A DNA stretch of 64,000 bases from Dimorphilus gyrociliatus (Eukaryota; Animalia; Annelida), in NCBI GenBank assembly GCA_904063045.1, contig CAJFCJ010000024.1, positions 372,001-436,000 on the forward strand. Direction: 5' to 3'. Below the pieces are notes generated by a model. That model saw only the letters and a program-made list of their open reading frames with translations, was not told the DNA's origin and made no database searches. Positions within the stretch are counted from its first letter, which is position 1. Every line of letters starts with the position of its first letter. Made by a program: the position numbers and the translations under genes. Positions 24,135 through 27,036 of the stretch are shown here, piece after piece.

Positions 24135-27036
24135 ATGGCCACTCGCTATGTTCAACCTGTCGTCCCTCCCGGTTTTCATCTTATTGAAATGAACAGAACG
24201 GTATACGTAATTCCAGAAAGATACACAGAGTTAAGCACGATCGGTCAAGGAGCATATGGCCAAGTTGTGTGAGTAACTTTATTATAGATTGTGATTACGC
24301 AAGCAAATTTTAAAATATATTCTATATTTACAGAGCAGCCAATGACACAGACCTGGGAACGCGAGTTGCAATTAAAAAGCTATCTAGACCTTTTCAAACG
24401 CATATTCATGCAAAAAGAACGTTTAGGGAAGTAAAAATGCTTAAGATGATGAACCACGAAAATGTAAAGATAAATATTAATATAATTTAAAAAAAACATT
24501 GACTTTATAATAAGATCTCTTGTCTAATCCGACAGGTGATTGGCTTATTGAATTTATTTACTTCTACACAAAATTTTGAGAGTTTTGAAGACGTGTAAGT
24601 AAATGAAAATAAAACTCCTGCTTTCATTTTCAACACATCTCGAATAATAATCGATCTTTGCACGTTATATATATATATATACATATATATATATATGTAT
24701 ATATACAGTATATTTTAAAACACAAAATTCCCTCTTCCCCATATATATAACAAAAATGTAGAGCATTTATTGCACATAGCATTCTGTGCAAATTTTTTAA
24801 ATGTTGTCTTTGTTTTTCACCTAGTAATTAGTGTATAAACATTTTGCCCAAACTCTACAGGTACCTCGTAACGCATAAAATGGGTGCCGATTTATCAAAC
24901 ATTCTAAAATCACAGACCTTGTCTGGCGAACATGTGCAGTTCTTGCTCTACCAAACTCTCCGAGGTTTAAAGGTGCGTTTTTTTTATACAGTTACTTTGT
25001 GTCCGATTTGGGAGGTGCCGATTTGAACACACGCATAAAAAAATTTGGTCCAATTATATCTGAAGCTGTTAAGTTGCTTGTTTATCAAATGCTTAGAGGA
25101 TTGAAGGTACTTACTTAATCATACAGTTGTAATATTAATATTTTTCTTTTTTTCCCTCATAATTTTAAATATAACTAGTAAAAAAAATATAGAGAATGAA
25201 CTCTTTCTTTCAGTGAGAAAGAGCAATTCTAGGATAATGTAAAATATATAGTTATTCTTAGTATTATTTATAATTACTACTATACTTTATTCTATATTAT
25301 CTTTATAAAAGTCATCAAGAATATTTTGTTCTTTTCATTATCCATTCAAATTTTCTATAGGTTATGATTTTTTACGTTAAAAGATAATAAGAAACAACTT
25401 AACCAATAAATAATACACAGATAGAAAGTTAACTGCCATATTTTACAAAAAAAAATGGTTACTTTCTTTGTCTTTATTCTTCTATTCGGCACATGATTGA
25501 ATTGATGTCAACAATGAAAGATAAAATGAGTGTAATTAAGAAAAGGATACAATTGCTTGTATTACATAACTAAATATAGCATTCATGCAAAAGTTGTTAT
25601 GCTAATTAGATTATATGTTTACATACATATAAGTATTGTATAGTTATAAATTATATATATATGTATATGTATTGGTATATATATTGAAATGTAGATATGT
25701 TTGTATCATGATTGGATAATTATTTCCATTTTCCATTTAGTATATTCATTCGGCGGGCATTATACATCGAGATTTGAAACCGTCAAACATTGCTGTTAAT
25801 GAAGATTGTGAATTGAAAATTCTTGATTTTGGTCTCGCTCGACAAACCGATGATGAAATGACGGGTTATGTCGCAACAAGATGGTACAGAGGACCTGAGA
25901 TAATGCTTAATTGGATGCACTACGGCCAAACTGCTGATATATGGTCAGTTGGTTGTATAATGGCTGAAATGTTGTCAGGAAAACCTTTGTTTCCCGGTTC
26001 GGATCACATCGATCAGTTGACCAAGTACAAACTCGCTTTTGTAACATTTATAACCCACCTAAAAATTTTCTCTAACCTTTAATTTGTCGCTTTAACACCC
26101 TAAAATCCTTCTTAAAGTCTTTTAGTCGGAGTTATTTTTCAATTATTCCACTATTTTTTATAATTTTTTCAGAATAATGGACATAGTTGGAACTCCAAGC
26201 AGAGAATTATTGAATAAAATAAATAGTGATGACGCTAGAAGATACGTAGAGTCCTTAGCTTGTAGACCAAGAAAGAACTTTTCTGAAATATTTCCGGTAA
26301 GAATTTTCCTAGCCTTTCTCTTAGTGTGCAAGTAAATGAATAAGTTAGCAAATTCGTTGATTTATTTATAAAATCATTAAGATTGTATTCTAAAAAGTGT
26401 CAATCTGCAATGTAAATGTAGGCTAAATTTGGTCGCAATTATTCTCGTATGTATGTATGTATATATACATCTCCTTTTGATTAAGCACTAACGACAGATA
26501 AAATTGCAAGAAGATTATAGATAAGATTTAAAGCTATGATTTAAAATTCATTTATGTTGATACCGTAACTAAGATAAATAAGTAACTGCATTAGTGCTGA
26601 GCCTTGTTTATAATAACAGATTAAAAATAAGCATATTGGATTATGCAGTTGAATAAAGTGATTTTTATAACCTTTGCAGAGCGCTTCACCGAATGCAATC
26701 AACCTGTTGGAACAAATGCTTGACCTTGATCCAGATAAAAGATTGGATGCAACAAAGGCTCTGCAACATCCTTATCTTGAACAATATCACGATCCTGATG
26801 ATGAACCTGTAGCAGATTTTACTTATGATTCTAGCGTAGATAATGATGCAACAGAAGATATAGCAGTATGGAAAGGTTAGTAATAGCTACTCCGAATTCA
26901 AATTTTCCTTTTAATGTATCATATATTAGGCCATTGTTACAAATACAATTTGACAATAATGCCACTTTTCTCTCCCGAAACAGGAAGAGTATATCAAGAA
27001 GTTTCAACATTCACACCTCGAGCTCAACAATTGTGA
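24135..27036 (+). CDS. p38: p38 mitogen-activated protein kinase
   Basis: Exons 24135-24268, 24334-24463, 24536-24594, [24861-24972 or 24992-25106], 25741-26024, 26173-26296, 26680-26875, 26984-27036. Motifs [25 protein letters not shown], activation loop TGY ([13 protein letters not shown]), LNWMHY, and CD domain YHDPDDEP. Confidence 0.97.
24861..24972 (+). CDS. p38 exon 4a (canonical hinge)
   Basis: 112 nt, phase 2 in and phase 0 out. Encodes [37 protein letters not shown]. Confidence 0.92.
24992..25106 (+). CDS. p38 exon 4b (duplicated alternative hinge exon)
   Basis: 115 nt, phase 2 in and phase 0 out, acceptor tttttttatacag and donor AAG|gtactt. Encodes [38 protein letters not shown] with no stop, homologous end to end with exon 4a. 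Confidence 0.8.

Follow-up and report, generated by a model that had tools for sequence, protein, structure and literature searches.

Two alternative versions of the hinge and docking-groove exon in the p38 gene of Dimorphilus gyrociliatus

Can a single p38-type mitogen-activated protein (MAP) kinase gene supply two different kinases by exchanging the exon that encodes its gatekeeper, hinge and docking groove? This question was raised by a stretch of 64,000 nucleotides (nt) from the annelid Dimorphilus gyrociliatus (assembly GCA_904063045.1, contig CAJFCJ010000024.1), hereafter called the window, in which a p38 gene carried two adjacent and homologous versions of its fourth exon, 4a and 4b. 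All positions are those of the window, and the record position is the window position + 372000. According to the original prediction, which was read from the DNA letters, one gene makes two kinases from these exons. We found messages containing either exon and conservation of both exons in a related species. It was highly likely that the two exons are truly mutually exclusive, with one used per mRNA, and that they give two full-length and presumably active p38 kinases.

Structure and splicing of the exon pair

The coding region occupied eight exon positions (Table 1), with AG/GT at every exon border. Its membership in the p38 family was indicated by the Thr-Gly-Tyr (TGY) activation-loop motif in exon 5. 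The best full-length match of the product was a vertebrate p38alpha-like representative (65% identity over 352 amino acids), and the best solved structures for exon 4a were those of MAPK14 and MAPK11. Within this gene the duplication was confined to exon 4, and the region of the C-lobe alternative exons was single. No second p38 gene was found within the 64-kilobase (kb) window.

Coordinates, frames and BLASTP all agreed with the first reading of the two homologous exons, including their phases, splice sites and peptides. Namely, 4a and 4b were adjacent, had the same phase (2 in, 0 out) and nearly equal lengths (112 and 115 nt), and encoded 37 and 38 amino acids, respectively, with 18/38 identical residues (47%, BLASTP E = 8e-09). 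Since the exons also shared about half of their nucleotide positions, the pair is to be read as an old duplication and not as a chance resemblance. Translation in silico yielded a full p38 of 363 amino acids with exon 4a alone and of 364 amino acids with exon 4b alone. It had been predicted that the inclusion of both exons or of neither would shift the frame, and the translations bore this out: they ended after 168 amino acids with both exons and after 119 with neither, and retention of the 19-nt spacer between the exons ended translation after 162.

The RNA evidence came from Logan contigs of four runs from four studies (X1-X4: one coral metatranscriptome, one marine metatranscriptome and two further runs) that were mapped to positions 23600-27600. 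All four junctions that had been named for checking (24594>24861, 24594>24992, 24972>25741 and 25106>25741) were present among these contigs. The path from exon 3 through 4a to exon 5 was found in X3 and X4, with both joints on one 169-nt contig, and the path through 4b was found in X1 and X2, where contigs of 777 and 969 nt extended from it through exons 5-8. Single contigs covered exon 3, 4a and exon 5 in X4, and exon 3, 4b and exons 5, 6, 7 and 8 in X2. Both paths were in frame, and one gene was therefore seen to give two kinase messages, as had been proposed. The joint between 4b and exon 5 occurred in all four RNA runs; in X3 and X4 the loose ends preceding 24992 matched the last letters of exon 3 in variant form. 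Exon 4b was the sole form assembled in the two metatranscriptomes. In X4 the word depth was ~239 for 4a and 284-322 for 4b, with lower depth in X3. Neither a 4a>4b nor a 3>5 joint was seen among the contigs of the four RNA runs, from which rare forms could escape. An unspliced piece of 79 nt across the spacer in X3, with a depth of 15 vs 33-64 for the spliced forms there, was probably pre-mRNA or DNA. Moreover, when runs were searched with exon 4b and its 7-nt flanks, DNA runs contained 9/9 sampled words and most RNA runs 8/9, as expected if the intron flank is absent from RNA.

Conservation of the exon pair and control of its splicing

A second species, a relative, was represented by two contigs, L001 and L002 (Logan runs SRR23372228 and SRR23372216), which were reached via the genomic open reading frame of the relative over exon 5. 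The two contigs were 99.95% identical to each other and had the same gene structure, including 4a, the 19-nt spacer and 4b. Identity to L001 was 77-90% in the constitutive exons, 112/112 nt in 4a, 19/19 nt in the spacer and 107/115 nt in 4b, so 4a and the spacer together were identical at 131/131 nt. A conserved block of 377 nt was 92.6% identical to L001 vs ~75% for the rest of the gene. It took in ~105 nt of the intron 5' of 4a (24756-24860) and ~25 nt 3' of 4b, and the remaining introns were barely alignable. Conservation as the product of an assembly chimera was ruled out: two independent runs agreed on the sequence of the relative, and a chimera was also contradicted by species-specific differences in 4b and the intron and by a third lineage with the same pattern. 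In this third lineage (X3/X4) there were 2/30 and 3/29 differences in the flanking exon ends and none in 4a or 4b.

Nei-Gojobori counts between the window gene and L001 gave for the constitutive exons a proportion of synonymous differences (pS) of 0.60, a synonymous rate (dS) of about 1.2 and a nonsynonymous rate (dN) of 0.057. Exon 5 alone had pS 0.56, dS 1.04 and dN 0, with 33 synonymous changes and zero amino-acid changes. For exon 4b the values were pS 0.17, dS 0.19 and dN 0.041; its amino-acid changes in L001 (K>R, K>R and M>L) were all conservative and its splice sites were intact. For exon 4a pS, dS and dN were all 0, and the probability of zero changes at its ~26 synonymous sites is near 1e-10 at the background pS of 0.6. 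Because both exons were conserved in L001, where synonymous sites are near saturation, and in the third lineage, we conclude from these comparisons that both are under selection. Beyond the constraint on the protein, the counts argue firmly for a strong constraint at the RNA or DNA level, strongest on 4a and the spacer.

These data left a negligible chance that 4b is a duplicate in decay, or that its messages are splicing noise cleared by quality control. It was the more divergent copy, and no 4b-like segment occurred in the other annotated p38 proteins searched. However, 4b was in frame, was the sole form in two metatranscriptomes at a depth that in X4 was similar to that of 4a, and had been kept with intact splice sites and conservative changes across near-saturated synonymous divergence. 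The check for decay that accompanied the original prediction thus found no dead duplicate, since 4b was kept in a second species with a dN of 0.041 vs the background dS of 1.2.

How would the two exons be kept apart? The spacer contains the U-rich tract of the 4b acceptor and nothing else, and 4a could not be spliced to 4b because there would be no room for a branch site at the normal distance. The branch site of 4b would therefore have to be within exon 4a or farther upstream; by eye, no yUnAy motif could be assigned convincingly to the 4b acceptor. The 19 nt of the spacer compare with 65 nt for the smallest other intron of the gene (the introns apart from the spacer range over 65-768 nt) and with a precedent threshold of ~40 nt in Caenorhabditis elegans. 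In that species egl-15 and let-2 have spacers of 14 and 30 nt, and the spliceable threshold is about 40 nt (PMC4165533). Among human mutually exclusive clusters, 9% are potential steric cases (PMC5740500). In addition, the frame rule that comes with lengths of 112 and 115 nt would serve as a second safeguard against double inclusion or double skipping.

The choice between 4a and 4b is probably regulated at the RNA level, because 4a, the spacer and ~105 nt of the upstream intron were strongly conserved between species. Folding suggested a candidate pairing between a docking-like arm in intron 3 and an arm within exon 4a that lies 40 nt upstream of the 4b acceptor (Table 1). The duplex consisted of two stems, of 8 and 9 base pairs (bp), on either side of a 3x3 internal loop; it had an energy of -24.1 kcal/mol and was present in the minimum-energy and centroid folds. 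Its energy was reached by 1/810 shuffles and by 0/45 natural 111-nt controls. This local-duplex energy test was the only one that discriminated: long-duplex energies and paired-base counts in 20-nt windows did not, and folding of the whole region was no better than that of shuffles (z = +0.7). L001 kept both arms at -22.8 kcal/mol; two of its three substitutions in the intron arm fell in the internal loop and one changed an A-U pair to G.U, and there was no double compensatory change. The intron arm could alternatively form a local 7-bp hairpin (24771-24792), also kept in L001. If the intron paired with exon 4a, the 4a acceptor would be looped out and exon 3 would come to lie near 4b. That a pairing of the docking-site/selector type governs the 4a/4b choice is possible, and we put it forward tentatively.

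The duplex by itself cannot explain all 131 unchanged nucleotides, and neither a branch site nor a duplex of 20 nt needs so many. This surplus would fit some other element that overlaps 4a, the spacer and the upstream intron (for example a small RNA, an enhancer or an antisense transcript) as the cause of their conservation. However, an Rfam scan at gathering thresholds identified no RNA family in the 64-kb window. The conserved block coincided exactly with the alternative-exon module and ended ~25 nt past the 4b donor, and alternative exons under regulation typically show strong constraint at synonymous sites. An overlapping element was accordingly considered quite unlikely, and regulation of the exon choice was the preferred explanation. 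Elsewhere in the window, a miR-100/miR-125 cluster that had been proposed at 56862-57335 was not confirmed by Rfam at gathering thresholds (no permissive scan was made). TA-rich microsatellites at 24660-24713 and 25645-25693 flanked the exon-4 module and were mutually complementary over 30-48 nt, which was probably a low-complexity coincidence.

The protein segment exchanged by exon 4

Exon 4a aligned without gaps to residues 103-139 of human p38alpha (48.7 bits), and 4b covered the same stretch with one inserted residue (21.6 bits). The alignment agreed with the T106S, H107D and M109G equivalents and the inserted residue that had been read from the DNA, and the gatekeeper and hinge were T-H-K-M-G in 4a vs S-D-L-G-G in 4b. 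We compared the segment across 100 canonical animal p38 proteins, in which M109, I116, Q120, L122, H126, Q128 and F129 were 99-100% invariant. Exon 4a retained all seven of these residues, whereas 4b altered all seven, namely to G, R, G (with the inserted F), I, A, K and L, respectively. The fold core (Y103, V105, G110, D112, L113, L130, Y132, Q133 and L135-K139) was retained in both. At position 106 the 100 proteins had Ser in 13% and Asn in 9% of cases. Since a Ser gatekeeper occurred in 13/100 p38s, the T106S change by itself is unremarkable. In comparison, H107D was rare and M109G occurred in 0/100. Exon 4a had a peculiarity of its own, a Lys at the equivalent of p38alpha Leu108 (24876-24878), where 99/100 other p38s had Leu.

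Several of the altered residues have known roles. I116, L122, L130 and V158 form the non-polar pocket that takes Ile372 of MK2, H126 and F129 are the site of MK2 Ile375, and Q120 is a hydrogen-bond donor in the docking groove (PMC12751014). Residue 120 differs in p38gamma and p38delta and may contribute to distinct substrate sets (PMC10691213). The two isoforms share the catalytic machinery and differ at residues 103-139, which comprise the gatekeeper, the hinge and the alphaD-alphaE wall of the D-motif groove. The 4a form keeps the universal p38 groove, and the 4b form swaps every one of its near-invariant residues and lengthens the loop by one residue. From the positions of the changed residues in the hinge and docking groove it follows that the isoforms should bind different activating kinases, phosphatases and substrates, and that they may respond differently to hinge-binding compounds.

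The same changes could also mean that the 4b message is real but encodes a p38 that is crippled or non-catalytic and serves to titrate partners as a decoy or scaffold. In 4b, Met109, invariant in 100/100 p38s, is replaced by Gly, an Asp stands at 107 and the hinge is Gly-Gly; against solved p38 structures 4b scored 21 bits and 4a 49 bits. However, exon 4 contains none of the catalytic motifs, which both isoforms have in common, the ATP contacts of the hinge are made via backbone atoms, and the segment has kept its structural core. The purifying selection seen on 4b (dN 0.041) is compatible with an active as well as with a non-catalytic protein. We regarded a crippled 4b protein as unlikely and two active kinases as the preferred reading.

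Some points nevertheless told against the picture of a sterically separated and RNA-regulated pair of active kinases. The RNA data were assembler contigs, which show presence but not absence, ratios, tissue, sex or stage. The spacer was judged too short by comparison with the smallest intron seen in this one gene, 65 nt. The best natural control for the duplex reached -23.5 kcal/mol vs the observed -24.1 kcal/mol, and the duplex rests on two species and three informative substitutions. Finally, M109G and H107D together could weaken the ATP site rather than retune it.

Two further peculiarities of p38 sequences were seen. The APE motif of exon 5 (25885-25902) was W-Y-R-G-P-E, with Gly for the usual Ala, in D. 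gyrociliatus and in L001, vs R-A-P-E in all other p38 sequences looked at. A divergent p38-like family in Argonauta and Octopus, annotated as 'HOG1-like' or MAPK14 (P0143, P0268, P0269, P0272-P0276), had a Ser gatekeeper and a hinge of the type 'Y-x-V-S-T-F-Y..DLK'. Some of its members had Gly-Pro in the alphaD-alphaE loop, like 4b; the resemblance was weak (43%) and the likeness probably convergent. The neighbouring genes of the window are included in Table 1.

Table 1. Positions of the p38 exons, the candidate pairing arms and other genes in the window, and of duplicated p38 exons in other spiralians.
Sequence	Feature	Position	Strand	Evidence
Window	p38-type MAP kinase coding region, start to stop codon	24135..27036	+	RNA joints and frame checks
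Window	Exon 1, start codon at 24135	..24268	+	
Window	Exon 2	24334-24463	+	
Window	Exon 3, constitutive, 59 nt; donor for both 4a and 4b	24536-24594	+	RNA joints 24594>24861, 24594>24992
Window	5' arm of candidate RNA pairing (docking-like), intron 3	24758-24777	+	Folding, duplex energies
Window	Exon 4a, 112 nt; canonical type of hinge and docking groove	24861-24972	+	RNA 3>4a>5 (X3, X4)
Window	3' arm of candidate RNA pairing, within exon 4a	24932-24951	+	
Window	Spacer between 4a and 4b, 19 nt, GT..AG; U-rich tract of 4b acceptor	24973-24991	+	Sequence
Window	Exon 4b, 115 nt; divergent type of hinge and docking groove	24992-25106	+	RNA 3>4b>5 (X1-X4)
Window	Exon 5, constitutive; HRD, DFG and TGY motifs; acceptor shared by the 4a and 4b paths	25741-26024	+	RNA joints 24972>25741, 25106>25741
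Window	Exon 6	26173-26296	+	
Window	Exon 7	26680-26875	+	
Window	Exon 8, stop codon included	26984-27036	+	
Window	Arginine/creatine-kinase-type exon	2363-2881	-	
Window	PET+LIM (Prickle/Testin-type) exon	11824-12732	+	
Window	UBE2N/Ubc13-like exon	28183-28593	-	
Window	Cys-loop receptor	34906-36135	-	
Window	Dishevelled (PDZ+DEP)	62957-63697	+	
Owenia fusiformis, L008	Three tandem exon-4 copies, 112 nt each, AG/GT	11335-11446, 12473-12584, 13546-13657		
Owenia fusiformis, L008	Two alphaF-exon ('VDIWSVGC...') copies	19948-20025, 20681-20785		
Capitella, L009	Two duplicated C-lobe exons (alphaG exon and following exon)	9346-9609, 10035-10402		
Lingula, L011	Three alphaF-exon copies	12470-14969		
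Mytilus edulis, L013	Two alphaG-exon copies	10828-12269		
Mytilus edulis, L013	Second exon-1-like piece	1453-1551		

Comparison with other systems and biological meaning

Scans of the p38 loci of other spiralians used the protein of each species, together with 4a and 4b, as queries. Exon 4 was single in Capitella, Helobdella, Lingula, Tubulanus and Mytilus edulis; no other duplicated exons were seen in Helobdella and Tubulanus, and the remaining three had duplicates of other exons (Table 1). Owenia fusiformis carried three tandem copies of exon 4, all intact. Similar to 4a and 4b, these are tandem copies of the same exon of the orthologous gene. However, they lie ~1 kb apart, are all of the canonical 37-residue type and are closer to each other than to 4b; only one of them is annotated, and the triplet is known from the genomic copies alone. 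It probably arose by an independent duplication. Given these genomic copies, duplication of exon 4 in p38 is not unique to D. gyrociliatus.

The original prediction placed the known mutually exclusive exons of vertebrate p38alpha and JNK in the C-lobe, and the annotated p38 isoforms were in line with this. In the RefSeq isoform sets of ten invertebrate species the differences were mostly around residues 228-256, one Mytilus isoform pair differed at residues 153-165 and other isoforms differed near the C-terminus; no set contained a difference in exon 4. According to the original prediction, a hinge-swapping p38 exon is not known to have been described, and neither these isoforms nor full-text searches of the literature, which found no description of an exon-4 swap in p38/MAPK14, supplied one. 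No 4b-like segment was present in the best 120 full-length p38s obtained with a profile that included 4b, nor in the representatives. Among proteins of 43-138 amino acids none shared three words with 4b. Given their length windows and list sizes, these protein searches are weak evidence of absence. In metagenome contigs of the Joint Genome Institute (JGI) the exact 4b pattern had no match, and a degenerate pattern had four chance matches with no p38 among them.

A close known relative of the arrangement is the C-lobe exon pair of p38 (CSBP1/CSBP2 of vertebrate MAPK14), which likewise consists of tandem duplicates used singly to give two kinases per gene. That pair encodes residues ~228-256 in the alphaG region, whereas 4a and 4b encode residues 103-139. 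In many invertebrates, too, this exon is alternative. Pairs of this type distinguished the tick isoforms X12 and X13 (alphaG exon) and RefSeq isoforms of bivalves, decapods, a damselfly and amphioxus, and Capitella and Mytilus had them as duplicates in the genome. In JNK (MAPK8/9/10), exons 6a and 6b are a mutually exclusive pair that alters substrate docking preference; however, JNK belongs to another MAP kinase subfamily, its alternative exon is part of the C-lobe and the exclusivity is ascribed to other mechanisms. With respect to the spacer, exons 5B/5A of C. elegans egl-15 (14 nt), exons 9/10 of let-2 (30 nt) and exons 2/3 of mammalian alpha-tropomyosin are steric cases in which the intron is below spliceable size, as is probable here. 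Compared with these precedents, the p38 pair adds a frame rule and an upstream exon that is unchanged at every synonymous site. The candidate duplex resembles the docking-site/selector pairing of arthropods (Dscam exon 6 and the 14-3-3xi type), where an intronic element is complementary to sequence just upstream of the alternative exon farther downstream, with the skipped exon looped out by the pairing. It differs in having a single selector-like arm, located inside the other coding exon, and in being seen in two species with little covariation. Vertebrate p38 paralogues (alpha/beta vs gamma/delta) likewise differ in gatekeeper, inhibitor sensitivity and alphaD-alphaE docking loop (PMC10691213). 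However, this vertebrate diversity came from duplication of whole kinase genes, and that of D. gyrociliatus from one swapped exon.

Thus, tandem exon duplication, a steric spacer and alternative exons in MAP kinases are known as principles. What is new is the position of the swap, at the gatekeeper, hinge and docking groove, together with the wholesale replacement of invariant groove residues in a form that is expressed and conserved. A more far-reaching model can be considered, in which the single p38 gene does the work of two paralogues through an RNA-structure-gated and sterically locked switch. A p38 with the universal groove and a p38 with a private groove and a Gly-Gly hinge would then each have activators, phosphatases and substrates of their own, possibly depending on sex or stage, and exon 4a would also serve as selector arm and branch-site region. 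This model is speculative, and as a whole it is rather doubtful. If it is true, the triple role of exon 4a (coding, selector arm and branch-site region) would explain the 131 unchanged nucleotides. The species in question is a strongly dimorphic worm with a compacted genome.

The D-motif groove and the hinge decide the recognition of partners and inhibitors by p38. The gene of D. gyrociliatus therefore offers a natural experiment in which one catalytic core carries either the universal or a fully replaced groove, both expressed and selected, and comparison of the isoforms would show directly to what extent these 37 residues determine the wiring of p38. Moreover, its 19-nt spacer, synonymously unchanged exon and candidate duplex make the module a compact system for the study of splice choice. 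Exon swapping in p38 is more varied among spiralians than annotation records.

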